Counted from the stretch's first letter, positions 58 through 56,800 are shown. The stretch is DNA of 64,000 nucleotides from Zygnema circumcarinatum SAG 698-1b (GCA_037447605.1 CM074808.1:3534001-3598000), one strand, 5' to 3'. The notes: generated by a model not told the origin, from the letters alone. Translations and numbers: made by a program.

Positions 58-2427
58 GTGGGGGAGTGAGCAAGCGGAAAACGGAATTGAATAAAGAAAA
101 TAAGGGGCCTTTTTCTTTATTAAGACATGAAAAAGGTAGAAGAAAAGGTGGAACTGGATGGAAGGTAAGTGGATGATCAAAGCAAGGCGTGAAGGGGGAA
201 GGAAATAACATGATATACAGATAGCACAAGCAAGGTGGTTCGTAGTTGGGATTTCTTCCTGCCTCCCTGTCCATTTTTTATTTTTGTTTTGAGGTTCTTT
301 GTTCACATTTGGAGGTGTGATGCGACGGGAGAATGGGGCGGAGTGGCTATGTGGGGCTAGCAGGGAGGTGGCCATGAGGAAAGGAGAGAGATGGGGCGAT
401 AAAAGAGGGAGAGGGGGAGAAGGGCGGGGGAGAGAGGGAGAGAGAGGGAGAGAGAGGGAGAGAAATGGGGGGAGAGAGAGAGTGGGGGAACAAGTGTACA
501 CAGGAAGGATTGTCGGGAGTGAAGGAGGAAACTGTGCAGAGAAGAGGGAAGAGAAGGAAAAAAACCGGCGAAACAAACGGAGCGAGAGGGGAATAAAAGA
601 AGGAGAGATAGAGGGATCAATCTGAAAGAGAGAGAGAGAGAGAGAGAGTGAAGGGTTAGGGAGCGGGTTATTCCATTCAGCGGGTAGAATCCAAGGACTC
701 ACCATTCTCTCCTCCTGAGTTGGAGTCCTCTTTTGCACTCGGCAGCATCGCCGAACCCAAAATCTTACCATTGTATTTCACAGAAGAAGATAGTAAACGA
801 AAAAAAAATAAGGGAAACCAAGAAAAAATCCTTTAAGAAAAAATGCCCTCTCTCTCTCTCTCTCTCTCTTCAGAGAGGGATCCACCGCCCTCCCGTTCTT
901 CTCCTATCGACCCCTTCGCGATTTGCCGCACTCTCTGTTCAACAAACTCAAAAATGGCGATAACCCAATTCAAAAAAGCCTCAAAATCAGAGAACCCACT
1001 TCCCGATTCCTTATTATATGAAAAAAATTCCCCTGAAATGTTTTTTCCAATTGCACGCTTCTCCCCTCTTTGCCACTTGAAATCATCCCCTCAATGTCTC
1101 GCAATAGGCCACAGCCCCTCCTCCCTCTCTCCGCCTTCTCTCTCTCTCTCTCCCTCTCTCTCCCTCTCTCTGCCTCTCTCTCTCCCACTCCCTCCCTCAG
1201 GCTCTTCCTCTCCCCCTCTCTCTCCCCCTCCGAACCGTCAACGGGAAAGTGGCTCTCCGCACTTTGCGGTCCAACGGCCGAAAGAGCCGTTGCGTGGTAT
1301 CCGCTGACCGTACAGTTTTGCAGGTGTGACGGACGGTCGACCAGAAACCACGGAGAAGTGCGACGGCTGGATGTGGATCTGACAATGAACGGTTTAGATA
1401 ACTCGGAGAATCGCGCAGGGAGCCACGATTCGAGTACAAATGGGGAACAGTGACGCTTTAAAAACTCAAATTTCCGTACTCTCGGTTCGCTGTTTATGGG
1501 TTTCTCGAATTATCGGTTTTTGCTTTTTGGACATGTTTTTTCTAAGAACATACCTTACTAGATTTTCCAAATTTCGTGCATAGAGCTGTAAAAATCATGT
1601 AAATTTTCACAGAGCTGTCACATGGAGCCATACCCGAATCTCTTTCTCAAAAAAAAAAAAAAGTACAAAAGCAGAACATCTCCACTTTGTCGGCTGTCTG
1701 GCACATCCACAAAACGACAAAATGTAGATTTCCTTCTGCTGAAACGCGAAACCGCCGTACCGTAACTCCCGAAGCGACCTCGTACAAAATCTTCGTAAGA
1801 TCTGTTTCAAATCCACCATCTACACGTGGGACTCTCTGATTCGTTCTGGAGTCCCACCTCGTCCCTGATTGGTCCACGTGCCTCCCAGCTCAGCCCGCGG
1901 CAGGCAGTTGTCCAGGAGCCTTCTGTCGTTTGCACTTGACGCGGTTCGTCGATTTTTTGGGCCACCGACAAATGCGACTTTGAGCTTTGTCATGGACCGT
2001 GCGATTGAGAGAGATTCGTCGCAGGCAAGTCGCATAAGTAATATAGACCGTCCGATTCGACAATCGCAGGGCACCTGGAGTCGCAGTCGCAGCGCAGTCC
2101 GGCGAATCGCCGTTGTCGGTGCACTCCCAACGTCGCCGCCTCCTGATGAAACCTCTCACTCCCTCCCGCTCTCCCCCTCCCCCTCCCCCTCCCCCTCCCT
2201 CTCCCTCTCCCTCTCCCTCTCCCCCTCCACCTCCCTCTCCCTCTCCCCCTCCCTCTCCCTCCCCCTCTCCCTCCCTCCACTCCCTCTTCCTCTCGCTTTC
2301 TCCTTCTCCTTCCCACTCACCCATACCCTCGTCCCCACCCTCTCTTCCTCCCACTCCCCTCTCCCGCATTCCTCTCTCTCCCTCCCTCCCTCTCACACTC
2401 CCTCCCTCCGCAGCCCCGCCATCCGCC

Positions 2428-4797
2428 ATGAACTTCTGGACCCTCCTCCGCCTTCTCTTTCTCCTCTCCCTTCTTGACGTGGTCGCGCCACGTGTCCTGA
2501 GCCCCGGCCTCTGCCCCGCGTACCGCGCCCTCGGTCGCTGCAAGAAGCGCTCGTGCAAGGGCTCCGGCGTGGAGGGCACCTTCCAGGTCCGTCCAAAACC
2601 CTAAAAAATTGGCCTTTTCAATACGTTCAAAACCCTAACTTTTTCTTTCTCAAATCCTCAGAATCCTGACAACTGACGTGACATCGCCAGATTCCGCCAA
2701 GTGCCGCGACCCTAGTGGCCGCCGCAAGGGAGGGCGCTGACGTGGAGGATGACGTGGCGCTCGCTGGAGGTGTACGCGTGGCGCAGCGGCGGACGGCCGC
2801 GCGGTGCTGTCGGAAGTGCAGCGAGAGCAACAGATGTGCCACGTGGCAGTGGCTCGACCTGTGAGTAGCGGGGGGAGGGGCGGGAGGAGATATGTGGATA
2901 GTGATAGAGAGTGAGAGAGAGGGTGAAAGAGAGGAGTGAGAGGGGGGGAGAGGGATTGAGAGAGAAGGGAGGGAGGTAGAGGAAAGAAGTGGAGATAAAG
3001 AGAGGGGCGGGGAGGGCGGGTAGGGAAGGAGGGGGGGGGGTATAGGAGATAAAGGAGACATGGAGGCAGAGAGAAAGAGGCAGAGGGAAAGAGAGAGCAA
3101 CATATCTGAGCCATCCATGGCGGGGTGGTGCAGGGGCGACAATGGCGGGCTCTGCTTCCAATACGAGGGAAGGGACGGCCCCACGTGTGGCCTCGATACT
3201 GACGTCATCACTCGTGTGGGCATGAGCTGCATGGACCCACACAACCGCAACGGAAACCGAAACTCTGACAGAAACGGTGACACACGTGACGACTCGAGCG
3301 GCGCCCTCCTCCCCTCCACCACCTTCTGCGCGCTCTCCGACCGGCGGCTGCATGTGAACATGCGGCTGGAGGGATACCTGCGGGAGACCGAGAGGGCCGC
3401 CGCGCTATTGAAGGGAGGGAGGGAGGCGAGGGGGTGGGTGAGGGAGGTGGGAGTGATGTGGCACGCGGGGGGAGAGGGCCACAGTCTGCGGCTCGCGGCT
3501 CGGGAAGGGAGGGAGGCGGGGAGGAGGGAGGGCTTCCTGGCCATGGCGACGGTAGACGGGGTTAAGGTCGAGAGGATGCAGGTGAGGGAGAGGGAGCGGG
3601 AGAGGGGGAGGGAGAGCGGGCGGGGGAGGAGGGCGGGAGGGAGGACGGGAGACAGGGGGGAGATGGAGGAGGGGTAGGTGGAGGGGGAGTGGGGGAGACA
3701 GGGAGAGGTGAGGTGGTGGGAGTGGGTGGGGGAGGAGGGAGAGAGGGAAAGCTGGGTGGGGAGTGAGGGAAGGTGAGGGAGGAGTCGAAAGCGGGGGCCT
3801 GGGTTAGGGTGAGGGAAAGGTAGAGGGAGGGGAGAGAGAGGGAGAGTGTGCGGGTGGAGGTGGGTGTGGGTAGTATGGGCTATGTCTGGTGTGAAGTGGT
3901 TTGAGTAATTTTGGCTTTGTTCGCTGCAGGTTGAGGATGAGGCGATGTTAGAAGGCGGACTGAGCCTGACGCTGGAGGCGGTGGAGAACGAGGGAAAAGT
4001 TGAAACGGAAGTTTACAGAGTGAAGATTACGGACTTGTTGGACATGGAACTGCGAATCCGTCCAGTGAATCCGCGCCTCCGAACGCCTGACGATGCGTAC
4101 ATACATTTCAACCTCGGCATCAATTGGATAAATGTGAGCACTGGCTGTCTCGTCCGATCCAATGCGCTTCAACTTTGTAAAATTCTGCACTTAACGGAAT
4201 TTGCTGTTTCAAGCGATGAAGTGCTAGATGCATTGTATGGTGCTTTCAGTTTGTCTTGTCTTGTCCCTCCCCCCCTCCCTCATCCCCTCCCATCCCCCTC
4301 CCATCCCCTCCCATCCCTCCCATCGTCTCTCATCTCCCCTCCCCCTCCCCCTCTCCCCCCTACTTCCCCCCTCTCCCCACCCTCCCCCTCTCCCCCTCCC
4401 TCCTCTCCTTCTCCCCCTCCTCTCCCCCCCCTCCCCTTCTCCACAGCCCTCTTCCCACTCTTCCCCCTCTCCCCCCACTCCTCCCCCATCTGACAATACT
4501 TTGTGGTGTGGTGGTGTGGCCTTTCAGACGACCCCCTCGATCCGTGGCGTCCTCAGTAAAGCGTATCGCGGAGCACAGGACGGTCGTGACATGGAACTGC
4601 AGGAAATGGCTGCTCTCCTCCACCACCTCAGCGCCCCCGAGCTGCATGATGCCACCCTCGCGGGGGAGACCATGGCCCATGTCTCCTCGGGCATCGTGGA
4701 TCCTGATTGCCAAGTTTCTTCCTACCAAGGGTATGACTCCACCATTCGACCCATCTATGAGAACGCCCAACAATCGGGGAGGTTTAGTCTAGTTTAA
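2428..4797 (+). CDS. Secreted protein: signal peptide + PAN/Apple-like Cys domain + root-cap/LEA-related (VWD-like) domain; 5 exons, about 416 aa
   Basis: Exons 2428-2586, 2691-2860, 3134-3581, 3930-4133 and 4528-4797 join in frame through GT-AG introns (phases 0,2,0,0). The start sits in ccgccATG context after a CT-rich tract. N-terminus MNFWTLLRLLFLLSLLDVVA is hydrophobic. CCRKCSESNRCATWQWLDLGDNGGLCFQY fits the PAN/Apple Cys pattern. CMDPH, FCALSDRRLHVNMRLEGY, WVREVGVMW, DDAYIHFNL...IRGVLSKAYR and SSGIVDPDC follow the order of plant root-cap domain motifs (CxDPRF, FCLVSDxxLHINARFIG, WIQALG, DDCFAHLEV...VEGVLGRTYR, TSSLLSPDC, recalled from memory). Confidence 0.8.
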
Positions 4798-5428
4798 GAA
4801 TTAGAAGTTCAGAATAGACATTGTACTTTAAAAACCCAAAATGTAGGCACTAGATGAGGTTAGGCTAAAAGTGCACATTTTTGTTTAGTCAGTTCTCGCC
4901 GTTACATGTGGCGTGGGACGAAGTTAGGGTTGAGCGAAGTTCCGTTATAGATGATGTGGAAAATGACACCTTGTTTAGGACAATAAGGCAGGCAGTAAGG
5001 CTCTTCTGGTCTGAGATTGGAAACTGCGTACAACCCAGTTTTGTAAAAGCATTTGTACGGGCCAAAGACTTTTATCGCTGCCAATAAGAAGGAAGTTCAA
5101 GTTAAGGAAAAAAACTTTCCCTCTTTGGTCCTTAGCCGCAGTACAATAGGTAGGGCAGGGGCTCCACGCGCAGCTTGTCTGCGATTAGTAAAAAAGAAGA
5201 TATGTCCCATCAAATCTGAATTTTCCTTTGTTATTTGATCCCAATCTCAAGGGCTCTTAACGCATTGAACAAAATTTTCTTATTCCCTATTCATACCTTC
5301 GCCTCATGATAAATTTATACTGCCATTTATAGAACATGGTGATTCCAACTCTCATCAACACAAGAATGCGCGCAACAACAAATTTCGTATGTTCTGACAC
5401 CCTAAGAATCCTCCCAAGCCTAAGGACC

Positions 5429-15876: not shown

Positions 15877-16101
15877 ACCGCAGACCTTCTGGAAGCCCTC
15901 CCTCTCCCATCCGTTTGAACGTCGCCGTCACTGACTGCACTTACCGTTCCCGCCCTCACTCTCCATCTCTCCCTCCCTCTCCCTCCTCTCCTCTCCCGCT
16001 CTCCCCTCTCTCCTTGTCCTTTCTCTCTCTCCTACCGCTCCTTCCTGGTCTCCCCCGGCCGCCTTCCTCATACCCTATTCCCCCCTCTCTCTTCCGCCGC
16101 C

Positions 16102-19100
16102 ATGCAGAGCTCAGACCAAGCCCTGCAGGGCCTGGCCCAGTGCTTCCTGGAATCGCTTTCGCACGAAGCAGAGCCCCGCAAGCGCGCGGAGGCGAACCTT
16201 AAGGCGCTCGCCGCCCAGCCGGGATATTGTTTTGCCGTGTTGCGCGTTGTGTCTGCGCCAGAGGTCGACCAGAACCTGCGCTGGGCAGCAGCGGTCAATT
16301 TTAAGAATCAGATAAAGTACAAATGGTCGCCGACGGAGCTGGATCAAGAGAGGATGGGGGAGATAGTGGCTATGCAGGTGAGCAGGCACATCTCACCTGC
16401 CTCACCTCACGTCACCTGGTTAGGGTTTGATGGAGGTGTGGGTTTGGTGCGTGCAAGTGGATATTGTTGTATGGAGGTAGGTGGAAATTTTAGTGGAGAA
16501 AAGTGTTTAGAAGGGGAAGGTTTTGGAAGAAGGGTACAGAGTTTCGGGGTTGGTAGTTTGGAAATACGCGAAGACACGGTGCAGTCTTGAAGGAGTATCT
16601 GGCATGCAGAAAGATTGGAAGGGTTAGGTGTCAGCTGTTGTGCAACAATGTTGAGTCCGTGCTCGTTGAGAAGGAAGTCTGTTAGGAGAGCAAGCAGTAT
16701 TGATTTGGACTGCTTGCATCCTGTAGTGGTTGTGAATCTTGAGAATCAGGTCAGTTTTCCTTCTGGGGATCTACCTATGTTTCATGTTTGACACTGTCCT
16801 GATGAACCTCTCCTTGCGATAGCTGAGCGGATTGCGGAATGAATAAGCAGTTTGCATGCATTGCCTACTTTCTCTATTAATGGTTCGTACTTGCTGCATT
16901 TGTCTCAGGATGGCGAAAAAGAGCAAATTAAGGCGCACATCGTGGAGCTGATGCTGAGTACCCCTCCGAGGATTCAAGCTCAGCTTTCAGAAGCTCTTGC
17001 CATCATTAGCACCCATGATTTTCCAGCCAAGTGGAATAATCTTCTTCCAGAACTTATCACCAAATTGGATACAACAGATTATACTGTCATAAATGGAGTT
17101 TTGGAGACAGCGAATTCAATTTTTCAGCGCTTTCGTGACCAGTACAAATCTAACGAACTGTATGTGGACTTGAAGTATTGTTTAGACAAGTTTGCTCCTC
17201 CGATGTTAGTGCTTTTCCAGAAAACTGGACAGTTGATTCTTGCGAGTGCGAACGTAGGGGATAATTTGAAGCGGTTGGTTCAAAGCCAGAAGTTGGTAGC
17301 ACAAATCTTTTATTCGCTCAACTCTCAGGAGCTGCCCGAGTTTTTTGAAGATCATATGAAGGAATGGATGACGGAATTTCATCGATATCTGACGTACCAA
17401 AATTCTCTGCTGGAGGAGACGGATGAGGTAGTTAAGCCTCACTTTCTCAATTCCTCTCGCTCGTCTCTCCTTTTCTCTCTCTCCATTTTTTCTTCTTTTA
17501 GTATTGTATTAATAAGAGGAGGGAGTGAATCTTTAGGACTGAGGCATATGGAATCTCTCACTTTTCTTCTCCCCTTTTAGGCTACATACAAGATGGAAAG
17601 CCAAGTCAGGTTCCTATGGTGTATTTAATTTAACAGGCCTCGAGGGGAATCCCACTACTTTGTCTTGACAAAGTAATGGGGATACACATTACCCAATTCA
17701 TAGCAGAATATTCATCGCCAGTTTTCATGGTGGTTAGCTCTAGTTCTTGTATAAGCTGTCTTTTGTTAATGGAGTATTTGGAGTGATTGTAACAGGTATC
17801 GGTGCTGGATGAGCTGAAAGCAGCTATCTGCGTGAACATCAACTTATACATGGAGAAGAACGAAGAAGAGTTTAAAGGCTATCTGCCCGGCTTTGTTATA
17901 GCTGTTTGGAACCTGCTTATGAGTGTGGGGCTTACCACCAAGCATGACCAACTTGCAATCACTGCCATTAACTTTCTTACGACTGTGAGCAAATCAGTTT
18001 ACCATACTGTTTTCAGTGACCCCACAAATCTCCAGACGATCTGCGAGGGAATTGTGATTCCGAATTTGCGGTTCAGGGAAGAGGACGAGGAGTTATTCCA
18101 GGATAACTTCTTAGACTACATCAGGAGGTATGTGTGTACTGCACATTTTGAGCGAATGCGCGAAAGACTCTCATATACTTGCACAATGATTGATTGAAAG
18201 AGGCCTATTCTTTCTTGTTCTGCAGGGACATGGAGGGTAGTGATTCCGACACCCGGCGACGAATGGCTTGCGAGCTGGTGAAGGGCTTGGCATCTCACTA
18301 TGAAAAGCAGATAACAGATGTATTTTCCCAGCATGTGGGGAAAATGCTTGCTGACTATGCAACAAATCCAGAAGAGAATTGGAAGGCCAAAGACTGCGCA
18401 ATTTATCTTGTGGTTGCTCTTGCAGTTCGGCAGAAAACAGAAGCAGCAGGGGCGACCTCTGTGAACGAACTTGTTAATGTAGGGGACTTTCTTTCCAATC
18501 AAGTGCTGCCAGAAATGAACACTCCAGATGTAAACAAGCTCCCAGTATTGAAAGCAGATGCACTGAAGTTTTTGACTACTTTTCGGACACAGCTGCCAAA
18601 AGCCAGATGCCTTGAACTGTTCCCGCAATTGATTCGTCTGATTCAAGCCGAGTCAAACGTGGTCCACTCATATGCTGCCAACTGCATCGAGCGGTTTTTG
18701 GTGGTTAAAGATGGGGGGAAGCCGCGGTTCACATCAGCAGATCTTCAGCCATTTGTGAAGGAACTGCTGGCTGCTCTTTTTGGCGGATTGAGGATATCGG
18801 ATTCTAATGTAAGTTGTGGTTGTACTGGCAAGTATCCTTTCTGAGATTGAAGAGAGAAAATCATGTCTGGCTGCATGTTGCATGATAGTTAAAACTTTCA
18901 AGCTATTCGCTGTGGAATTATGTAGAGAAATAGAGCCGGGGAGAGGCGGGGGGGGGGGGAGGGGGGGGAGGAGGAAAGGAGAAGAGGGAGGGAGAGAGGT
19001 TTTTAATTCTTGATTCTCAACCACCATTGTCTTATGCATTGCAGGAAAACCAGTACATTATGAAATGTATCATGCGAGTCATATCCATTGCTGACCTTGG

Positions 19101-20617
19101 CCCTCTCGCACCTCCCATAATAAGTGAACTTTCTGCTATCCTCGTTGAAGTATGCAAGAACCCTAAAAATCCATATTTCAACCACTATCTCTTTGAGGCA
19201 GTAGCAGGTCTTGTGAGGAAGCCATCCGCCGCGGACCCAACTCAAATTGCAGTGTTTGAAAACACTTTATTTCCCTTCCTCCAAATGATTCTTGTAAATG
19301 ATGTGCAAGAGTTTTCCCCCTATGCCTTCCAAATCCTCGCCATTTTGGTTGAGACCCGAAAACCTCCGCTTCCCGACGTCTATATGAGCATTTTCTCAGC
19401 CCTTATTTCCCCTCAATTGTGGGAAAGACCGGCCAATGTTCCGGCTCTTGTACGGGTATTGCAGGTTCGTACGCCTCTCTATTCCTGAAACTTGATTAAG
19501 CCATGAATGCATTTCCTTTGAACTTTTTTTCCAACTTTCTTCCTTACTATCACCACTGCCCTGCACTACCACAGGCTTATCTGGAGAAGGCGGCACCTGC
19601 TATTGTCTCGGCCAATCAGTTGCTTCCAGTACTCGGAGTATTTCACAAGCTTATAGCAAGCAAGCATACGGATCATCATGGCTTCTACGTGCTGAACACT
19701 GTCGTGGAATACCTAACTCCTGATGTGCTTTCTCCTTACATGAAGCAGATCTGGAATCTTCTCTTCTTCCGCTTACAGGTTTCGTCTGAAGCCTTAGTGC
19801 CCATTTCTTCCAGGCTTATCGTTTTTGGTTTCTCAGGGCACCACAAAAGGTCACTCTCTCAATTGTTTTCTTTGTCGTGCGGGCTTCTTGGGCTTGCAGG
19901 ATTCGAGAACCCCAAAATTTGTGCGAGGTCTTCTTATATTCATGGCTCTTTTCGTGGGGAAACATGGAACGGGACCTCTCTTGAATTCTGTGAATTCTGT
20001 TCAACCTGGGCTGTTCCTTCAGCTGATTGATCCTGTATGGGTCTCCACGCTTCCAATCATCACTGGGAGCATTGAGACGAAGCTATCGGTAGTAGCAGCA
20101 ACGAAACTTTTGACAGAATGGCCAGATTTGCAGGTAAGCTTACGCTTTCTCACAAGTTTTCAAAGCTTTGATTCTCTCTGCTTGCTTTTCAGCTCTTTGA
20201 TAGCCTCTCGCAAACAGAACTCTGGAAAAATTACAAAGCCCTAACTGCTACTTTTATCGTTGCCCTCACTTCCAGGTCGACGCAACGTTGCCACTTTGGG
20301 GACGCTTGCTTAATTCGACGGTTACATTAGCGGTACGTCCTGAGGAAGAGAGAGCGGTAGACGTGGATATTCCCGATGAATTGGACGAAGTGGCAGGCTA
20401 TCAGGCAGTGTTTGCGCAGTTGTATAATGCGGGGAAGAAGGAGGAAGACCCGATTCCTGACATCCGGGATGCAAAGGAGTACTTGGCGAGGGGAATAGGA
20501 GGAGTCTACAACCAAGCGAAGGAGAAATTCACGGGAGCTATTGGGGCAGGTTTGACGGGTGATAATCAAAAGGCGCTGCAGGAATTGTGTGCACGTTATG
20601 GTGTCCGGTTGGCGTGA
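16102..20617 (+). CDS. CSE1: Exportin-2 / importin-alpha re-exporter (CAS/CSE1), multi-exon
   Basis: Importin-beta N-terminal motif (RKRAEANL...[16 protein letters not shown]), [120 protein letters not shown]. Stop at 20617. Confidence 0.97.
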
Positions 20618-40319: not shown

Positions 40320-40512
40320 TCGCACCAGTGAGTGGATCATCAACCATTGGACAACCATGAGATGGCAATGGTTGGAAGTCCGATGGTTGGCAGCCAGTCG
40401 AATGGTTGCCAACCATTGGCATCCACTGGTTCCGAACCATTCGAATGGTTTGTTTTGATCCGGCGCCAATGGTTGGCTACCAGTCGAATGGTTGGCCTAA
40501 TGGTCCGACCTG
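40320..40512. repeat. Array of CAACCA/TGGTTG palindromic units (copy B)
   Basis: Homologous to 36505-36650; contains CCAGTCGAATGGTTG units. Confidence 0.8.
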
Positions 40513-41548: not shown

Positions 41549-44500
41549 TTACTCGCCCTGTCGGCGTCTCTGCACGGTTACCCTCGTCTCATATACCGGA
41601 ACTGCTTCTGCAACCCCGCTTTCCGGATATCCACTTTCCGAAAAATGACTTGAGATTTCCGTTATTCTACGAGGAGCCTCATCTTCATTCCCAACTTTCT
41701 CCGGCTCCTCTTCATTTGGAGCGTCTCTTGTCACGGCTGCTATGCTCTCTTGTGATGATTCCTGGCCGGCTTCAACGTACAGCTGGTGGTGGCCCTCTGC
41801 GTTGGTCTCGACAAAGGTTGGTGAACTCGGCTGCCTCCACAGATGCTGCAGTTCTGAAGGGCTCTCTAAAAAATCCTGTCATAACCAATGACCAGTTTTT
41901 CAGGGGTGTTACTCTACTAGCAATTGCTCTATATTTTCAGCTTTTACTGACGATGAAACAAGCGATAAAACGCAGTTTCAAATTATCACAACCGCATTTC
42001 CGACCAACATTTCACATACTTCTTCATCAAGGTAAGGACAGAACAGGTAACGATTACATCATGGAGCAATGCATATTCATCACAGATTACGAATGGGAAG
42101 TTGAGAAAGGTCGGCAGCCAACCTACCTTTGTATTCTGTTGGCTTCTTCCTTCTGCTAGAGGTTCCTTTCCCTGTCGTTGTCGACAGCGAGCCCAAGCAA
42201 TAGTAAGAGCGACTATGAGTATGAGGCCGAGAAACGCCCCTGCTAGTGCAAGCAGCCATGGCAACTTACTTTTATGGGATGGAGCTGAAGGCAAATCTGC
42301 AATCACGCAGTTTTGATGAAATCAACAAAAACTCAAATCTCTATGGGAGATAGTGGGTTGACGGAAAAAGGAAAAAAAACATGGGTGAAATTCGATAAAA
42401 ATCTCCTTGGAAATGAAAAAAAGATATTGGCATAGAAGGATGAGGCTACTGAAGTAAAATGTACCTGAAGGTGATAATGCATGTCGATCAACGACGATAG
42501 AGATGGTCCAGTTTTTGGAGTAAAGAGGCCCTCCACCTCCTTCTGCACCAGTAGTTTTCAACGAGACCAGCAAGGTCGATGCGACTTGCACGATTGTACC
42601 CTGAACATTACAGGAGTTCATAGCACGCTTAGAGCCGCTGTCAGTTCAGATGGTGGTTCCGGCAATAAAATAAGGCATCCCATATTGATGGCTGTATCTA
42701 GACTTTGATGCTTTGATTCTGAGAGGACGACATTTGAGCTTCGAAGTTACATGTGCATCACGCACTCATGCTTATAAGCTTCCCGAGTTAAACGTTGTGA
42801 TAGTACCCCACATTTTCACTGGGCGGAAAGTAAACGAGATGTAGCAGCGCTCTGTTCAAGGTTTCTTCTTGCCCTTCCACATCGACAACCGGTCCCTGCA
42901 TTTAGCCAACGGCAAAAGCTTAGCCTCGTCTCGGTTTCATCCCCTCTCACACTTCCATGCAGGGTCCAAGTGCAAGACCTACCGAAACAGGACCTTGTTG
43001 AAGAGGCATCTGCAAGATTCCATGCCCTACTTGCAAGGAGATCTCCAGTACGACCTCCGAACTGTCTGCATGGCAAATACAAGCTTTCTTATTATGGGGA
43101 CACAACACAGAAACCCAGGTTTTTAGCAGCGTTATCATCAAAGAACCATTTGAACATACTGCAAATTCTGGTCTGCTTAGTGCTTACTGCTTACTCGCTC
43201 ATGCATTAACCAACCTGTTAGTGATATTCCAGACAGGAGAGTGCCATTAGCAAGAACCGCCGCTTCAGCATCTGAAGTTGTGATATTGATAGTGAAACTT
43301 TCAGGAGCAAATAGAGTAGCCGATCCATCTGCAGCCGAAACCCTAATTTCCACATAGCCCCTTGCTGTGCGGTTCAGGTCGTCCCCGATCTCATAGGCGA
43401 GCGCGTCCACGCCCTCAAACGCCTCAGCGGGCGTGTAGACAATCGCCGAGCCATCCACCCGCGCGGCTCCATGTGACGGATCCTGCACTCGCAGTAAACG
43501 TTGGTCTGACGGTTCTCTGCAAGAGGACGAAATATGTCGAGACTAGTACATATTGTTGGGGATGAATGCGGTAATAGCACGCAAAGAGTACTGTTTCTGG
43601 AAAACATCTCGAAGCACGACCCTTTCGATTTCTTCGCCCAATCTAGCTCTGATTTAGGGGCACGAACACACTGAAAAGTACATGTTAAGTGTATGGAACA
43701 CAGCTCAATCCCTAGGGGCACGTGCCAACCTGTACGACACCCAGGAGCATAGCCTCTCCGCGCGCCACGTGGCATCCCGCGAGCGCCGCTACGCGCACAC
43801 TGACTCCCCCGTGCGTGGCCGCGCTGTGATTGGCCGCCACAGGCGCGAAGTCCACTGCGCGCACACACCCCCCCTCCCCCCTCCCCGCCGCCTGTCAGCG
43901 TTTTCTCGGTGCCAATGGTTGTCAACCTCGCCAACGGTTGTCATGATGTCAATGGTTGTCAATTGATACAATGGTTGTCATAGTGCCAATGGTTGTCAAT
44001 TGAGCCAATGGTTGTCAACCGAGACAACGGTTGTCAGAATGCCAATGGTTGTCGAGCGAGCCAACGGTTGTCATAATGCCAATGGTTGTCGAGTGAGCCA
44101 ATGGTTGCGGCATGAGAGAATTCAGGCCGGCCTTCGGGCAATACCGTAAAGCTCAAGCCGGCGAGGCTCTTACTTGGAAGGACAGTCCAGCTGAGCGAGT
44201 GACTCGGTCCAAAGGGCAGCGAGAGGCCCTGGAGGGTCGCAACTACTGTGTACTGAGCAGGTCCTGCTGCTGTAGCGCTGACAAGATAGGTTCCATTCTT
44301 CAGATCCTGCACAGTGACTGCAGGTTGAACGCGTGCAGTTACTGGTGTGTTCATCATATCCTACCAGCTAAACCGGTACAGTGAATTACCGTTACAGGGT
44401 TAAAAAAAAAGGTGTCAACATCACTCTACTTTTGGCTGGAGAATCTGCTGAAATGGACCTCAACCAAGGTATGCACGCAACTGAGCGTAACGGCGTCCAT

Positions 44501-46287
44501 GCTTACTGGTTGCTTGAGGTCCACTGGTGGAGTTGGATATCAGACGCACTTTGAAAGTCGCCCCTCCCTCTGTTAGTGGGTTTCCATATGTATCGCATGT
44601 AGTTAATGACAGAATGGTCGTTGAATTACTTTTTGAAGTGAGTATCCAGCTAGGAATAGTCTTCTGGAGGTAAAGTCCGAACACCTCCGTGGCAGTCACG
44701 TCAAGTGGCCCTATATGCAGCGAAACCAATACATTAAGCTCCCTTTCATCTCCGGAAATTTTTCTTTTTGGATGGGTTTTCTGCAAAGTAGGTGCCAGAT
44801 TGCATTCTGCAAGATGTGAGAATGGTTGAAAGTCAATTTACCTGGCGTAACAAGAACTGAAACGGGTCCAAGCCCGACCAATGTGCCATTGTAAAATGCC
44901 ACAACTTTGTGTTCACCCGCTTTGGTGAAATTCAAAAGGTAAGTGTAGGTTCCATTTCCCCTATACGTTGGGAGACCGTTGCGGTAGGTCTCCTGCTCTT
45001 GAATTTGAAATAGATCCGTGTACGTGGACTGCACATTGCCAAATGCATCTCTCGCAACGATGTGCACAGAGTACGATTCTCCCGCAACAATAGCTTCATC
45101 TGCATCCCCGTTAATGTCCGATGCTTCTGCAGATATGGGGCCTGCAAACAAGGTAGAATTCCGAACAAAACCACACAGGACGAAATTCCACGTTATCAAG
45201 GCAAGACACGCAGGGCTCTTGCTGTCCTGAGGACAAAACAAAAATCTGGCTGCCCTAAAGGCTTGAACGTCCTAAAACTCCTTTCATGTCACTGAGAAGT
45301 TAAGACATGAACCTCAGTAGCCACACCTGGCAACACAGGCGGAAGGTACGTGGGCTCATCGGCATTTGATGTGTAGCCTGTCCTGCTCCAAGTCTCCTCA
45401 TACAACAGCCATATTTTTAGGAGGTATTGTCCCGCTATTGTGGCTCTAAACTGCACAGTGTACACTCCTCCGTCAGATGGTAGCAGCATAACCGGCAGCT
45501 GCTGCCCCGTGCCATTGTGAATGAGGTCAATACGAAATGTGTCCCCTGCAGAGTCCAGCAAGTTTGACAAGGCGCTGAAGGTGGTCCAGGTATCACGCGC
45601 GAATATATGGAAAGTGGTCAAAGTGCCTGCTTGTATGCTGGGTGAAGACCCAAGAACCTTTGGTAGGTCAGTGTTTGTACGTCGAGGAGATGCAGGAGGC
45701 ACTGCAATCATTTCCAATTATCGAAAAATTGCTCTTTCAGATTGTGAGAAATAACGACTGCTGAATTGTTCCATGCCAAGAAGATTGTGTGTGAGTGTGT
45801 CCTCCTGCTTCTCTAGGTGTATAATGTATGTAATTCTCGTTCATATGACGTTTGAGTACGAGGAGGCAAATGTACACGGCCTTGGTGGGATAAAGGAGAG
45901 GGCACTTACGGCCAGGTTTAATGTATAGCACGTTGCGGAAAGGACTGCCAGCTATATGTGTTCCTCCTGACGTAGTCTCTGTGATTTCAACCGTGTACAA
46001 TACAGTGGTTCCCTGCAAGTCATAGTTCGGGGGAGCCCCCGCATTTTGCCTATATGAAGATAATGTCGCATGATAGGTGAGTAGGTAGCCGCCAAGCACT
46101 GCCTGTTGTGTGGCGGGAGAATGAGAGAAGTCCGCAGAGGGGCTGAGAGTGAGGCTGAAATGGAGCGAATCATCCGGTGTGGCCGTAAACTCGCTCCCAG
46201 AACTGTCTCGCAACTGCACGAAAACAGAGGTAAACCCCACCGTCGTGTTGCTAATGCGAGCAGTGCTGTGTGGGATCGACACGGGCC
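41549..46287 (-). CDS. GEX2: GEX2/FUS1-like single-pass membrane protein with filamin-type Ig repeats and a bacterial Ig/cadherin-like (Big_9-type) domain; 5' end not resolved
   Basis: Successive exons encode filamin-like repeats (GPVSIPHSTA..VQLRDSSG..IAGSPF; AGTLTTFHIFARD..DGGVYTVQFRATIAGQYLLKI; GPISAEAS..IVAGESYSVHIVARDAFGN..GNGTYTYLLNFTKAGEHKV; GPLDVTATEV..TCDTYGNPLTEGGATF..LKNGTYLVSATAAGPAQYTV). A Big_9-like unit follows (DPSHGAARVDGSAIVYTPAEAFEGVDALAYEIGD), then an Ig unit (LNRALLHLVYFP), a TM helix (WLLALAGAFLGLILIVALTIAW followed by RCRQR) and a roughly 110-aa cytoplasmic tail ending at 41549. This architecture matches GEX2 as recalled; orthology not tested. Confidence 0.7.
43911..44108. 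repeat. Minisatellite: 11 copies of a CAAYGGTTG(TC) core at roughly 18/19-nt spacing, inside a GEX2-like intron
   Basis: Copies counted directly; 5-6 nt variable linkers; core related to the CAACCA/TGGTTG arrays at 36.5 and 40.3 kb. Confidence 0.9.
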
Positions 46288-46430
46288 CTACACATGCGCT
46301 GTCACAGTCCTGTTGTCAGCCGCCTTTCAAGTGAGACGCAGGTCCTATTGGCACTTGACTAGACCCTCGATTGTTCAAAGGAGGAGATTAGCAGGCGCTA
46401 AAGGCAAAGGTACTCCCTGTGGTAATAATA

Positions 46431-46646
46431 ATAGAGTCAAAAATTCAACCATAAAGAACGGCAAAAAAAGTGCTCTCCGAACCGTGCGAGATGATCACCC
46501 ATCACACGGCTCACCACCTCTGTTTTGTTATTGAGTAACACATTGACCAGCAGAACCCAAATTGCTTACAGTGAAACATGGGTGCAACAAGCGAACGCAG
46601 CTCGCGCGGCGCTACCTTCGGTAGCTTGCTCACGCCGTTTTGAAGC
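46431..46646 (-). other. 3' part of a mitochondrial group II intron (domain V 46479-46512, domain VI, ending ...GACTCTAT) directly before the atp6 exon 2 start
   Basis: Minus strand reads GAGCCGTGTGATGGGTGATCATCTCGCACGGTTC (34-nt domain V), then GGAGAGCAC...TTGACTCTAT ending in AY, then TATTATTACCACAGGGAGTACC (LLPQGVP). Confidence 0.9.
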
Positions 46647-47205
46647 NNNNNNNNNNNNNNNNNNNNNNNNNNNNNNNNNNNNNNNNNNNNNNNNNNNNNN
46701 NNNNNNNNNNNNNNNNNNNNNNNNNNNNNNNNNNNNNNNNNNNNNNNNNNNNNNNNNNNNNNNNNNNNNNNNNNNNNNNNNNNNNNNNNNNNNNNNNNNN
46801 NNNNNNNNNCAGGCGACCGTAGGGCCGTAGGCGGGCGACCTCGCTCGCCCGGCGCTCACTGCGTTCGCTTGTTTCACCGTAAAACCGAGCGAGCGCAGCG
46901 AGCAAGTCGAGCGCAGTGGAACAAGCTACTGAAAGTAGCGCCGTGACGCAGTCACAGGCTACCGAAGGTAGCGCAGAGTGCAGAGTGCATAGCGCTATGA
47001 GCGAGCTTGTTTTCCCCTTCACGCTCTTGTTTCAACCAAACGGTCGCCTACCTACGGCCCAAGGCTTGTTTGCTTCGTCGTCGATCGCTTGTGTTCGATT
47101 GCTTCGCGACAAGCTTTGAGCGTGTTCACGCATTTGAGCGCTGCGTTGCAGCGCTCGGCTCAGGTCGTCTCCTATCATAAAAGCAGCAGACTTGATTCTG
47201 AAATA

Positions 47206-47525
47206 TTAATGAAGATTTATTGCGTCATTTAGGTAAATACATATTAAAATAGTGAACACATAGGCTTGTAATACAGCAACGCCGAGCTCTAATCCAATTA
47301 AAGCAAACACTATCAACAGAGGCGCAAGATGAGCTAGATACATAATACCTCCCATAGACAACATAGTCCAGGCAAATCCACTTAATATTTTAACTAAACT
47401 ATGGCCAGCCATCATATTTGCAAATAATCGAATTCCTAAACTGATTGCTCGAAAACAATAAGAGATCAATTCTAAAAGTACTAAAAAAGGCGCTAAAGGC
47501 AAAGGTACTCCCTGTGGTAATAATA
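47206..47525 (-). pseudogene. atp6: Mitochondrial ATP synthase subunit a, exon 2 only (NUMT fragment)
   Basis: LLPQGVPLPLAPFLVLLELISYCFRAISLGIRLFANMMAGHSLVKILSGFAWTMLSMGG...QAYVFTILICIYLNDAINLH*. The 5' half is absent, and the exon is preceded by only intron domain VI sequence. Confidence 0.93.
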
Positions 47526-49269
47526 ATAGAGTCAAAAATTCAACCATAAAGAACGGCAAAAAAAAGTATCTGCAGTCTTCATTGCTTCAGCCTTTGGAAG
47601 GGAGAAGCGCAGCTCACCGGCCGCTGTCAGCAGTCGGACGGCGCGGCCGGGACCGAGCGCCTCGCAATGCGTCCGCGGGAGCGCGTCCGCCGAGCCTGCG
47701 CCCATGCACGCTTGGGACCGTCTTCAAATTGCGCCTCCTCCCTTCTCCTCTCTCCCTCCTCTCTCTCTCTCTCTCCTCCCACACCCCTCCCTCTCTCCTC
47801 CGCGGAGCCATCGAGCAGCCCCCCACTGCACGCGGCTGGCGGCAAAGCAGAGAAGTGATATCGCACTGCCCACAAGGAGCGCTTCCTCATATCGCAGCAC
47901 AAAGACCTAGTTTTTGAGAAGGCCATGACGCCGCCCCTATGTCCTAAGCGACAGCGGCGACTCCTCCTGACCCGACGACCGCAACGTGACTTCACTTTTG
48001 TGCGCACACCACATCGGCATCAGCATGCCTGAGTAGGAGATTTTTCTCCACCTCGTCCTTGCGTGCTTCAGAGGACGGGGAATAATCACATGTTTCTTTT
48101 CAAGACGATGCCCGCCTTTTCCTTTCGTGCTTTCCTACTAGCGCAACTTTTCTCTGATTGAATGTGACGAAGCTTAAGATATGCTTGTTCTTGTATTCAA
48201 TCACCAAACAAGCAGACGCCTTCGCATGAAAGCTGGAGAGTACCGGTGTGTTTCAGTATAGCAGCGTCTAGCATCCGCATGTTTTGCCGAGCGATGCATT
48301 GCTGCCTCTACATATCGTTATTAAGTGTGCTCCAACTGCTATCTCAGTGGCTCTGAGGCTGCTCAGCGGCTCCGCTCAGCGAAGATGTGCCTTCTTTGTT
48401 GCAGGCCGGCCTTGTAGCTCTTTCCTCTCTTGAACACAGACACCGAAAGCAATATGCTCCCGCACTCGAGCAGTCCAGCAGTGACACGACTGGAAATGCT
48501 TGAAAGAAGAATTTGAGAGCTACATAGGAGAGCAGAAACGATGGCCTTCTCCATTTCGGACACTCGTCACAGCACTGAAATGGCTTTGCTTACTGCGTCG
48601 ACAAGAGCACGGAATGGAATGCAGTCTTTTGGCGCTACGGCTCAGCTTTTTGGCATTCTTGAAAATTCCTTTCAAGTTTGCCCACGAGTATGCACACTGG
48701 GCTACTTCCTGCCTTACAGCACAAAATGCAATTCTGCCAAGGTTCAAGTTCCTTCTGTTGTTACGTTTTGGAGGTATCTCCAGCCCCATCGCAGCTGCCG
48801 TTGAAGCGGAGCCGCCGCCGGCATAAGCGGCCCAATGTAGCAGCACACACAATGTTGTACACCTCATGAGCCACCACTCACACCCATCCCTAGCCCTCCC
48901 CCAACCATGCCATGTACAACAACAACAACAACCCCTCCCAATAGCCCCCATCTGTAGCGCCTCACGCCCTCGCTCCCACGTCCCAAGCCCACCTCCCCTC
49001 CCCCCACTCCCCTTTGTAGGCCCGGCAATTTTTTGTTTGCCCTACGGCCCCCACCAACGTGGCGGGCGGAAGGCGGAACGCCAACCGCCGGCTGCCACGT
49101 AGCGGGCCGATTCAACCGCCGTCTGGAAGCAGCCGGCGGCCGTACACTTCAGGGACCGGACGGACAACCGGGCGGGGGGGATTGTCGTTTTGGAGGACCG
49201 GTGGAGTATTGGAATATCGCCAACGTATCGGGGATCACGAAACGACCACTGACGGCCAAGGCCGGCCGG

Positions 49270-50104: not shown

Positions 50105-52884
50105 ATGGGAGACAGCCGTAAGACGTGGCCTGGAGTGAGTTATTTTTCTGGCAAATGCGAAGAAACTCGCATGTTTGATCCGCATGGCACGGCTCATCGA
50201 GGCAGAGTAAGGCAGAATGACTGCGAGCGAAGGAGTCCAAGGCAGGCTGCCGCGGACGCAGGAGCTATGCTAACTGGATGGGATCTCGGTCAAGGAAACC
50301 ATTCTGCCATTGAACCTTTTTTGAACGACATGATGAAAGAAGAAACTTTAAATGACGAGCTCTTGCAACATTTGCAAGAGAGGTCCGTAAAGAGAAAGAG
50401 GTATAACTTCTCTTGTCAAGTCCTTGAGTATTGTATGACTTGAGCATTGTATCCTCAGCAAAAGCTAATTGAGGGCTTTTGACCAATATGGATTTGAAGG
50501 TAATCGGAACGATATGAATTTCCTTTAGTTGACTGGCCGGCTATAAGAAATTAGAACATTTGCTGTTTGTAATTACCCTGCTCAAACGTGTGCCTTCTCA
50601 AGAAGAAACTTCCCCCATTTGCAGTAGGTCATATACTTTTTACTGCTGGATTGGCAGGATAGGTTCAGAACTAAGGGAGGAATTGAAGCATTTGTTCGAG
50701 GAGAGGAGGCGAAGCCAAGCAGTGGAGCAGGAACTTGAACGGCGGGTTGCCACTCTTGCAGGCGTGGCAGCGAAGGTGAGAGGAGAATTACCACCACGTC
50801 CACTGGACTTTTATATTAACCAGCTTCAAGGTTCCTAGTATGTTTTTGTTCTAGCTGAAAGAGCGACGCTCTTCAATCATATACCAGGAGTGCCGTTTAA
50901 TATTTTTCAAACATAGACGTGAAAGGAGTAGGGCGAGATGGCTTTCATTTAGTCAACAATCGACGGTGTGTGGAATGCAGGAGGCCAAAGCAGAGGCGTT
51001 GAAGGTCGAACTTGAAGCTTTCAGCTCTGACCTTTCCATTAAGGTGGGCGGTATTCTCCGATAGTTTGTCATATTCTTGTTTGTTTATTAAGCTTTTGCA
51101 AGCTGAATAACGGGGCCTGGTTTTTTACGACTCCGGATAGTCCTATTTCATGCTGGCAAATCTAGAGCTTTACTGTGCACTTTAAGGGCTGTGCGGCCCA
51201 CGCCCGCTCAGCTTGCATTAGTACACAGCAAAGGAATGTATCGTTAATAGCAGCTTTGCGTCCGTCAATAGTCAATCTAAGCTCGACCTCTCTTTACTGT
51301 AGCAACATTATGTTATGGCAGGAAGCAGAACTTCAAAGGAGGGAGAGGTCAGTGAAGGCGGCTGAGGAATCTCTCATTTCGAGGGAGAAGGATTTAGTGA
51401 AGAAATTACATGATTTGGAGATGAGAGAAAAGGAAATTGCTGAACGTGAGATGCAGACTCGCCGTTTGCGACGACGCAAAACAACAGGTGTAGGCTACAC
51501 GGCACAGCATCGCCTTGAAGGACATTCTCGGGAGCAGGATCTGCTGACTCTTCCTGCTCCAGCTTGTAAGCTTGAAGAAGAACAGCGCTGCAATTCTCCA
51601 CCTTTCCAAGAGAACAATCAGAAGCTAGTCGTTGCTCTGCTGGAAGTGGAGCATTTCCTCCAGGAAACACCCTCTCCTTGCTCCTCCCTGCTTTTGAATG
51701 GATCAGTCGGTGGGAATCAGCTTACTCAGGATTCATCGTCTGAACTGCTGGGGAAAGAGGAAACTTTCGGAAACAACGTGACACCGGCCGATAATGTTTG
51801 GATTCTTGCACTACCTGCTGTGGTGCGCCAACCACCTTCATCTGCTTCGAGCGGTAAAGCTGCAAGGAAGGAGAGGGTGAAGGAAAGCATGGATGAAAAT
51901 TTTGTTATTGGACAGTCTGAACTCCATGCCAGCTGTATTGCAGCCGGCATAAGTGGGAAGCCTCATTCAAATCTTGGGAATCATGAGGAGGATGATATTG
52001 TTGGTAAAGCAGGAGGGAAAGGTGGAAACGGCAGAAACAGCCGCGCGACTTTGGAGGAAGCCCTGAAGCAGGATATGCCAGAGCTTTTTGCGAGTATGCA
52101 AGAGAAGGGGTTGCTTGAGGATATGACGAGCTTTGATCGCGTGCTGTTGGAGGATGATAAAGATGAAGACATTGATGGACTTGCAAGTCACGGGGGCTTC
52201 ACAGCACTGCAAAAAGTCTTACGAAAACTTTTTGAAAAGTCCCAGGAGGGAGGACGTTGCCCAAGTTCAGGATGGCAGCAAGTAAACCAGATGAGCACCC
52301 TTTTGAACGGCCGGCAAAAGTATTGTATGGAGAACCTTGTCGCTCTTTTGGATCAAATGAAAGCAGTCAGACGTGCCGGGTGGCCTGTAATGTGGAGCTG
52401 GAGTCGAAGAACAAGGGCGTTTGTTTTTGTCTTCAATCGGCATAATCGGATCGTCTTGGAGTGGCCTGAGTACGGAAATGCGACGTACTTTTTTGAACTG
52501 GAGGCAGACATGGCCGTGGAGTGGCAAGTGAAACGTATTCTGGCAGTGATGGCAGCTTCATATGTGGGCAAAGCCTCAATAATCGAAAACAAGTGCCTTG
52601 AAGTAGGGGTCGATATAAGTGTGCAGGAGGGCACGTTGCTTCAATGTTATGGGTGGTCCCCGAGCAGTGGCCTGGGATCACTTCTGAACTACTGTGACCG
52701 ACTCTTCCATGACTACAAAAAAGTGGACAAAGGTGAATCTTTTCAGCGAGCCATCTCAGTATGGAGAGAAAGAATTGGCAAAAGGCTGGTAGAGGGGATT
52801 GGTCGAGGCGGCCGAACAAGGGAACTTCCAGAGGCTTATCTTCTGTGGAACAGGCATCGGTCAGAAGATGAATCTCACATCTAA
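50105..52884 (+). CDS. Uncharacterised protein: N-terminal coiled coil, low-complexity middle, conserved-looking plant-type C-terminal domain; multi-exon with a terminal exon of about 1.56 kb
   Basis: In-phase exons IGSELREELKHLFEERRRSQAVEQELERRVATLAGVAAK and EAKAEALKVELEAFSSDLSIK, then the terminal exon from about 51321 to stop 52884. It contains KYCMENLVALL..GWPVMWSWSR..FVFVFNRHNRIVLEWPEYGNATYFFEL..WQVKRI..YGWSPSSGLGSLLNYCDRLFHD, which I recall from unannotated land-plant proteins. Start codon uncertain. Confidence 0.75.
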
Positions 52885-53868: not shown

Positions 53869-56800
53869 TCATTTGAGTTGGTGAGTGAACACAAGGAGCA
53901 CCGCCGTGCAGTTGTCTTTGCAGCGCCTTTCGCGGATGGCCTCGCGCACCAGTCGCCTGCAGGCCACCTCTGCGCTCGCTCCTTCCTGGCAACAGGAGGA
54001 AGGAAAAAAAAAGACAAAAGAAGTGAAAAAGAAAACAAGTCCGAGCCGTAATAAAACGCAGTTCTTGCTTCTCATGCCAAGCAATAGCAGGAGTTCCAGC
54101 TCTCCCTTCCCACTGTCAACTTCTTTTGTTTTCCACTCTTATCTCTCCTCTCGCCTTCTCCTTCCATCAGCTCTCTTTCTTCTTCTGACAAGCATCCTTT
54201 TCAGCCCTGTGCCTCTCTCTGCCGCACCAAACAAAACCTCGCGGAATTCGCACGTGCAGACATCTCGCCCTAGGCTCGAGGTGCAAGGAGTGGCAGTGCA
54301 CACCTTTAGTTGCTCTTCCACAAACTTCACCGCATCCTCAGTCCCAAACACCTGCAATGAGGGGAGAATACATACAAATAGAAGCAAATTACCAAGGAAA
54401 CGGCTATTCATAGAAAAAAAGAGGATCACGATACGCGACGGTCCCAAAAGCCCTCCCACGAAATGTTCCATCCGATATAGCCTCACTTCGGAAAATGTAG
54501 CCTGACGCACAACTGACGGACAGGGAATATACCAAGTAAAACATATTGAGAAAGAAGAGAGTGAGTGGAGGGGGGGAGGGGGAGTGGAGAGGGAGAGGGA
54601 GGGGGAAGGGAAGGGGTAGGGGTAGGGAGAGGGGGGTAGAGGGAGAGGGAAAGGAAGAGGGAAGGGGAGCGAGGGAGAAAGAGGAGGCGGGAGAGGGAGA
54701 AAGTGTGAGAGAGAGTGAGAAAGAGCAGCTTGTCAAAGAGCCCTCACCCCCCACAAGCCGTCACAGCCGAGAATAAGAAAGCGCTCTCGCTGAGACAGCT
54801 CAAAGGCTGCAACATCAGCGACCGCAGATAAGCCCGCCTGTGAATTTCACAACCGACCAGCCCACTCCCTATCAGCTATTCTTGTCCGCGTAAACAAAAC
54901 ATAAAGTCTCAATGCAGTAGTTAAAGTTAGAAAGGCGAATCCACGTCTTGAGAGATGTGAACGGAGTCCCATGCGGTTATGATTGCAGTTCACATTTAAC
55001 CAATCTGAGACACGAAGGAGGCTACGAAATCTGTAACCTTTTTGAAGGGTCTGTCTCCAAGTGCTCGTGAGACCTCCACACGTCCAAGGAGACGCCCATC
55101 TTTGGCCACATAACCGCCCGCCTGAAAAGCTCGAGACATATTATGGATATTAAACTTGAACATGATATTAATCGCACCCAACTCTTCAAATTTTAAATCC
55201 TGTACCAAACCTCTGTTTCCGGAATGCTCCACCTGCTCTCGCCAAACATATTCCATTCCACATTCTTTTGCATGTTCACATTGCCTTCATGGAGGCTAAC
55301 ATGATAGCGATGAAGAGTGCTTTCTTTCTCTGAGATGAGGGATAGCCCATACAAGTAGTCGAAAAACAGGAGGGACTCGATGCATGCATGAACCTTTGAT
55401 TAAGCCTTCTCTACATTTTCTCTACATAAGAACTGTCAATCAAACACTGTAATGGTGTGTACCACATGTATGAGATTCACGGATTTACGGGCACTGTCAA
55501 TGAGCTTACATTTTCCCTTAAGTTACGAAATGCACAGTCGGAAGAATCTCAGTTGTACACCCACCTTTTCTATGCGTGCTCTTTCAGAAGGGAAGATGGC
55601 CTTGTGAGACCTTGTAATTACAACTCCCTTTAAAGGCACGCTTTGACTCTTAGAAGCTGACCCCTCATTGGCTGCAAGAACTGAGGGCGTTGAATCTTGA
55701 GCAGGTGGAGGAGCCCTTGCCAGAACCGCCATAGCATCTCCCAAATTTGCCACAAATACCTGCGAGAAAATCACATCTCTTCAGAAGAGCTAAAATGGCG
55801 GGCCATGCATTCTAAATGTATGAGAAATACGGCATCCTTACTATGCATACGTAAGCGAACGCTCATAAGCCAGTAGTAAACCAAACCGATAGCCTATTCA
55901 CGGGGCTGATTGAATGTTCAGTTCAAACACTCCAACCTACAGCCAATTGGGTAGAAGCTGAAATCATCTGCGGTAGGACGGAAGTAGGTCGGTTTGTGCC
56001 GATTAAGAGGAACAAAATGTAGGACACCGACACAAAGCGTAGATTTTGGCACCTAGGGATTGCAGTTAACTCACCATCTGTCCGAGAATCCAAACGCAAA
56101 CAGCTGCTGCTCCATCAAGCCATCCCTCTGCACTCGCAGAATCGATAAGGAAGTAAGTTCGTCTCGAAGCAAAAGTTAAGAACAAGGAGAACGGAAAGAA
56201 AGTCTCATGAAATGAGGAGGTGCCAGTCAGTAAGACCTATATATTTTGCTGTTTATTTCCCGAACAAGCTTCTACAACAGAAGGAACATCCTGGACCACC
56301 CTTTCTCTCTCTTTATTGCTGCGCTGTCCCTGCCCACTCCTCTCCTTTCCCTCTCATCACACCTCCTCGCACCTTCTCCTTCTCTCACACACACGCACAC
56401 AATCACACATACTGTGTCAAAGAGAGTTACCTGCAGCGCTGACCTTGAGGAGGTCCTCATCAAGCTTCTTTATTCCTGCACAAATCGAACATAACGTCAA
56501 AAGGACAAATCAACTTTCAACATAGCATTATCTTGTAACCTCGAAACTCTTTCACTCTACTTCACCCTACTGATGGTTTGTTGTCACCGTGTTGAGATTT
56601 GATTCACATAGTTAGCATACAAGGCACTCCTCCCACTCTCACTCTCATCACCACACCTCCACCTCCTCCCCCATCTCTCTCTCTCTCACGCACACACGCA
56701 CAACCAGGAAACTGGAAAACAAACAGAAGTTCACCTTCAATAATCGCTTTTTTTGCCACCTTAGGATTTAACTGGTGCCCATCCCCAAAACATCCAAAGG

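Follow-up and report, generated by a model that had tools for sequence, protein, structure and literature searches.

The window analysed here is a 64,000-nucleotide stretch of Zygnema circumcarinatum SAG 698-1b (GCA_037447605.1 CM074808.1:3534001-3598000). On its minus strand, at positions 41549-46287, lies a candidate gene that we tentatively read as encoding a plasma-membrane adhesion protein with the layout of FUS1 and GEX2, incomplete at its 5' end and serving gamete adhesion of the GEX2 family; we give this reading a little less than an even chance. GEX2 is required for sperm attachment in flowering plants, and Chlamydomonas FUS1 binds MAR1, triggering HAP2-driven fusion. Positions are those of the whole window, and the exons of the model were joined by their coordinates on the minus strand. 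The model consisted of 11 exons (E1 to E11) with AG/GT borders and compatible phases, giving about 838 codons uninterrupted by a stop, from the first recognisable exon, which opened at 46287 after an AG, to a TAA stop codon at 41551-41549. The interval given in a preliminary description of the locus (41549-46287) fitted this model exactly. E1 opened at an acceptor and so cannot be where the coding sequence begins. E1 to E6, which code for the immunoglobulin (Ig) repeats and a Big_9 unit, were consecutive, each a multiple of three in length and each of symmetric phase 1-1, as is typical of extracellular domain exons that have been shuffled. An exon missing between E5 and E6, suspected from a phase clash, was ruled out, as E6 starts at the second AG of a tandem acceptor (43514), which restored phase 1-1. 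The donor of E8 was uncertain, with an alternative GT a few codons earlier. Family, structure and homology searches were all run exon by exon.

The preliminary description had called at least four filamin-type Ig repeats, and four were supported by a protein search with E2, a structural template matched by E3, a local hidden Markov model (HMM) and hhalign. Searched against 1.84 billion representative proteins at E<=1e-3, E2 returned 27 protein matches, the best (2.7e-14) to multi-filamin proteins; two of the 27 (P0019 and P0020) were tandem-repeat artefacts. A Pfam scan of 16 of the matched proteins identified filamin- or invasin-type Ig repeats in 14, the other two being of bacterial type with other domains. 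The local filamin-repeat HMM, built from the repeats matched in this search, recognised E2 at 3.4e-17 and E3 at 8e-17, and hhalign gave E2 a probability of 98.8%. In Pfam, E2 scored 19 bits against Filamin, and E3 matched Invasin_D3 at 4.1e-6 and Filamin at 0.0088; on single exons (E2, E3 and E5) all Filamin matches lay below the gathering cut-off. Among structures in the PDB, E3 matched FdeC, an invasin-like adhesin (4E9L), at 1.2e-6, and E2 gave a weak match to gelation factor (1WLH) at 0.37. The fourth repeat was divided between two exons. E4 aligned to positions 17-53 of the local HMM (2.9e-4), with Invasin_D3 at 0.0015 and hhalign template columns 25-59, and E5 aligned to positions 54-91 (1.4e-4), with Pfam Filamin positions 53-89 at 0.0095 and template columns 68-99. 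As the two exons take up adjoining parts of the same profile, they are the halves of one repeat. The most divergent repeat, E1, scored 0.012 with the local HMM and had no Pfam match, while hhalign aligned it to the filamin-repeat profile with 85% probability (6.7e-6), taking in the 'F-x-x-x-x-D-x-x-G' strand, the 'G-x-Y' strand and the terminal GSPF motif. Its nearest clusters in the ESM Atlas (score 0.93) were algal and carried Filamin and Ig_GEX2_N, a result that we treat as a lead only. AlphaFold2, run on E1 as a single exon and with no alignment, produced an all-beta model with a predicted local distance difference test (pLDDT) score of 59, and fold searches with this low-confidence model (Foldseek and VIA-align) gave no significant match (best E 0.038, Z 3.6). 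The repeats were only about 30% identical among themselves, which indicates that the array is old.

Between the fourth repeat and the transmembrane exon, E6 matched Pfam Big_9 at 28.5 bits, above the cut-off of 23.6, over profile positions 38-88. It also matched the NCBIfam tandem-95 model (tand_rpt_95) at 3.4e-7 over positions 32-86 of 98, and Pfam Cadherin_5 at 8.5e-4. Residues 7-60 of E6 covered about two-thirds of a bacterial tandem-95/Big_9 unit, so the Big_9/cadherin-like unit of the preliminary description is upheld as to its family but is truncated on the N-terminal side. All nearest clusters of E6 in the ESM Atlas were bacterial Big_9/Cadherin_5 proteins, again a lead only, and its AlphaFold2 model, made with no alignment, was unusable (pLDDT 38). 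The rest of E6 together with E7 to E9, about 150 residues, had no family match in the Pfam and NCBIfam exon scans; a further Ig unit had been proposed here, and what we can retain of it is a beta-rich stretch whose pattern presumably resembles bacterial cadherin-like domains.

The topology of the product could be read from several agreeing signals. E10 contained a strongly hydrophobic helix (Kyte-Doolittle mean over 19 residues of 2.78) followed by a basic stretch, with eight lysines and arginines in the exon. All 12 N-glycosylation sequons (N-x-S/T) lay before this transmembrane (TM) helix and none after it. The orientation is fixed by these sequons, all of them on the outside, and by the basic residues after the helix. 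The cytoplasmic tail of about 130 residues was acidic; in E11, which had no sequon and no Pfam match, 22 acidic residues (D+E) stood against 9 basic ones (K+R), and the model as a whole was acidic as well (81 D+E to 50 K+R). The predicted product is a type I, single-pass membrane protein with a rod of beta-sandwich domains outside, probably glycosylated, and an acidic tail inside, and the single TM helix and cytoplasmic tail of the preliminary description stand. A filamin proper, that is an actin cross-linker, was considered and ruled out: no exon matched a calponin-homology (CH) domain in Pfam, a TM helix is present and the repeats are placed outside the cell, on the glycosylated side.

This layout is that of two known gamete adhesion proteins. 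In FUS1 and GEX2, seven Ig-like domains in a row form the ectodomain, and each protein crosses the membrane once (bioRxiv 10.1101/2021.09.03.458930). The land-plant GEX2 subfamily combines filamin repeats, Big_9 and a C-terminal TM helix in proteins of 100-125 kDa with an isoelectric point of about 5, encoded by 14-16 exons, and the surveyed filamin-domain genes of land plants in which filamin, Big_9 and TM occur together belong to this subfamily (PMC9777546). Compared with land-plant GEX2 as published (e.g. Arabidopsis At5g49150), the Zygnema locus shares the filamin repeats, the Big_9 unit and the C-terminal TM helix, in that order, and is likewise acidic and rich in exons (at least 11). Its length of at least 838 amino acids compares with about 900-1100 in land-plant GEX2 (PMC9777546). 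FUS1, the mt+ gamete adhesion protein of Chlamydomonas, has 823 amino acids, an all-Ig ectodomain, one TM helix and a short tail (PMC8777248). The locus resembles it in being of type I with a row of Ig-like beta-sandwiches of invasin/filamin type, but differs in its long acidic tail and in possessing a Big_9 unit, of which the publications consulted make no mention for FUS1. Templates reported for both FUS1 and GEX2 were FdeC (4E9L) and gelation factor (1WLH) (bioRxiv 10.1101/2021.09.03.458930), and the locus shares the FdeC match with FUS1 through E3. The claim that the locus reproduces the architecture of GEX2 therefore holds for the modules and their order, for acidity, exon number and shared templates, whereas sequence kinship with GEX2 or FUS1 was not shown by the exon searches.

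Several observations weigh against a place in this family. None of the 20 E2 matches that were looked up (from the total of 27) was named GEX2. The E2 relatives were filamin-repeat proteins of Gefionella, Diphylleia, Mantamonas, Guillardia and metagenomes, and they included cytoplasmic CH-filamin-RasGAP (IQGAP-like) proteins. Pfam Ig_GEX2_N (PF23616) reached at best 12.9 bits, on E3, below its cut-off of 27. Six units were visible, where both GEX2 and FUS1 have seven domains, although the N-terminus is missing here. Two disulfides are conserved in the first domain of chlorophyte FUS1 (IgL1), but E1, the first domain visible in the locus, contains no cysteine. To the same side belong the state of the 5' end, where no ATG or signal peptide preceded E1 and an in-frame stop lay just upstream of its phase-1 acceptor, and a mitochondrial insert that begins about 100 nucleotides upstream of E1. 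PDB searches with the exons returned no FUS1 or GEX2 chain, including the FUS1-MAR1 structure 9QS0. Some of these points carry limits of their own. Filamin proteins that are generic or cytoplasmic reach 37-111 bits with Ig_GEX2_N, and a score from this model therefore speaks neither for nor against membership. FUS1 and GEX2 share only about 16% identity, and it took iterated searches to link them (bioRxiv 10.1101/2021.09.03.458930), which makes the failure of a single-exon search to find GEX2 weak evidence against kinship. The exon searches thus pointed both ways: the best matches of E2 were generic filamin-repeat proteins, and E3 found the 4E9L template reported for FUS1 and GEX2.

The locus might instead encode a general vegetative surface adhesin or receptor, serving cell-cell, cell-wall or substrate adhesion or sensing, assembled from filamin-Ig modules and cadherin-like modules of bacterial type, both of them widespread, and not orthologous to GEX2; its likeness in layout would then have arisen by shuffling of symmetric phase 1-1 domain exons. 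We consider this possible, though on the whole improbable. It would account for the closest relatives of E2 being generic filamin repeats of unrelated protists and metagenomes, and for the Atlas neighbours being unnamed algal filamin clusters for E1 and bacterial tandem-95 proteins for E6, and the uninterrupted phase 1-1 run from E1 to E6 would have eased such shuffling. It fits less well with the land-plant survey, in which filamin + Big_9 + TM genes belonged to the GEX2 subfamily (PMC9777546), and with a size, acidity and exon number that suit GEX2. The relatives concerned also differ from the locus as whole proteins. The protist multi-filamin and CH-filamin-RasGAP proteins were the best sequence matches of the second repeat, with about 28-33% of residues identical in each repeat. 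They are cytoplasmic or very large, reaching 6000 amino acids, and have 5-13 repeats but no Big_9 and TM ending, so that the likeness is at the level of the common repeat type only. Bacterial FdeC-type invasin/intimin-like adhesins and tandem-95/Big_9 adhesins, matched by the third repeat and by E6 respectively, also form surface rods of beta-sandwich domains, but the locus is eukaryotic, contains many introns, and encodes a type I TM anchor of eukaryotic kind and a single partial Big_9 unit. That there is no gene at all, and that chance open frames have gathered weak domain matches, might be argued from the sub-threshold Filamin scores of single exons. We regard this as highly improbable, given independent significant matches (2.7e-14 in the protein search, a PDB chain at 1.2e-6 and a Big_9 score exceeding the cut-off), collinear domains, complementary halves in E4 and E5, consistent splice phases and agreeing topology signals.

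A recently disabled remnant is an unlikely alternative: inserted mitochondrial DNA would have deleted the promoter and the signal-peptide exon, perhaps along with an Ig exon at the N-terminus, or cut them off from the rest, leaving no functional protein. The insert contained the C-terminal half of mitochondrial atp6 (Pfam ATP-synt_A, 1.5e-26), and it hides or disrupts the 5' end of the filamin-Ig gene. Its nearness to E1 and the lack of a start before that exon would suit a remnant, as would the result that the local HMM found no further filamin- or Ig-type exon at 36-56 kb on either strand; that the locus stands alone in this interval counts in favour of the GEX2-family reading as well. The N-terminal truncation of the Big_9 unit, preceded by an intron with a minisatellite and a G/C-rich stretch, points the same way. 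Against this, about 838 open codons in 11 exons with intact splice sites would be unlikely after long decay. An exact direct repeat of 77 nucleotides stood at both ends of the insert (46393-46469 and 47488-47564), with a gap of 163 N at 46647-46809 between the copies. The insert looks like either a nuclear copy of mitochondrial DNA (NUMT) or a scaffolding artefact from mitochondrial reads; the exact duplication around the gap has the appearance of the latter, so that the assembly may simply lack the real 5' sequence. Beyond the insert, a short ATG-started open reading frame (ORF) on the minus strand at 48765-48867 ended on a phase-1 GT that fits the acceptor of E1, and its start was mildly hydrophobic (Kyte-Doolittle 1.0); that it is the first exon of the filamin-Ig gene is only a guess, though one that would also speak against a remnant.

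Returning to the GEX2-family reading, we postulate that the locus would be the member of this family in the alga; a signal peptide, and perhaps a seventh Ig domain at the N-terminus, would then be encoded in sequence upstream of E1. By analogy with FUS1 and MAR1, the Ig domains farthest from the membrane might recognise, on the opposite gamete, a partner specific to the lineage, and such binding could hold the two gamete membranes together until HAP2 fuses them, as in Chlamydomonas. That the locus is a true streptophyte-algal orthologue of GEX2 is a narrower claim, which we hold to be well possible, though somewhat less likely than not.

Features of the filamin-Ig locus and the adjoining mitochondrial insert (positions in the window)
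Feature	Start	End	Strand	Length (nt)	Phase	Content and basis
E1	45910	46287	minus	378	1-1	Divergent filamin-type Ig repeat 1, GSPF motif at end; opens at acceptor
E2	45327	45701	minus	375	1-1	Filamin-type Ig repeat 2, long loop near end
E3	44842	45141	minus	300	1-1	Filamin/invasin-type Ig repeat 3
E4	44507	44710	minus	204	1-1	Ig repeat 4, first half
E5	44174	44317	minus	144	1-1	Ig repeat 4, second half
E6	43215	43514	minus	300	1-1	Truncated Big_9/tandem-95 unit, then start of membrane-proximal beta-rich unit
E7	42983	43065	minus	83	1-0	Part of unclassified membrane-proximal unit; inferred from borders and phase
E8	42794	42895	minus	~102	0-0	Part of membrane-proximal unit; inferred from open frame and acceptor
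E9	42465	42600	minus	136	0-1	End of membrane-proximal unit; AG/GT borders and phase
E10	42127	42296	minus	170		Juxtamembrane linker, single TM helix, basic stop-transfer stretch
E11	41549	41875	minus	327		Acidic cytoplasmic tail and TAA stop
atp6 insert	46393	47586	minus			C-terminal half of mitochondrial atp6; not part of candidate protein

The surroundings of the locus were also surveyed. A multi-exon gene for exportin-2 (CAS/CSE1) lay on the plus strand at about 16100-20250, and one of its exons (16.9-17.4 kb) was 64% identical to a Logan fragment and 60% to angiosperm exportin-2; identity of 60-64% to land-plant exportin-2 places the window in the nuclear genome of a streptophyte. The same exon served as a control for the protein collection, in which its best match of 64% indicated that the proteins of this species are not represented. 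Word searches of that collection with E3 and E6 gave no match and metagenome scans with the same exons gave no relatives, and because the proteins of the species are not in the collection, these blank searches say nothing about expression. The E5-E6 intron contained a minisatellite at 43911-44107 with nested periods of 19, 37, 56 and 93 nucleotides, adjoining a G/C-rich stretch (43700-43900); related 13-mers occurred at 40408-40477 and 36534, and the minisatellite may be a dispersed element. On the plus strand at 51175-52884, an open frame of 569 codons with no obvious domain by eye probably belongs to a neighbouring gene upstream of the intergenic region. An exact look-up of the product of one neighbouring ORF returned no record. 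CT-rich microsatellites were present at 47734-47801 and at many sites at 800-4800 and 54400-54750. These yield long spurious ORFs of the 'SLSLSPS' type on both strands, and ORF calls of this kind are artefacts.

The FUS1/GEX2 family reportedly extends across the green plants (bioRxiv 10.1101/2021.09.03.458930), so a member in a streptophyte alga is to be expected and would not be surprising; no streptophyte-algal GEX2-type gene was described in the literature searched. For now the candidate is chiefly useful in directing targeted RNA-seq and re-assembly to this locus. A confirmed member from the streptophyte-algal grade would help to align both ends of the FUS1/GEX2 family and show which modules, such as the Big_9 unit and the tail, are ancestral, and it would provide a marker for algal sexual stages. 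If the locus is a true orthologue of GEX2, a filamin-Ig rod with a membrane-proximal Big_9 module would predate land plants. We know of no female-gamete partner for GEX2, and an orthologue in Zygnema would offer an algal system in which to seek the egg-side partner of GEX2-type proteins.

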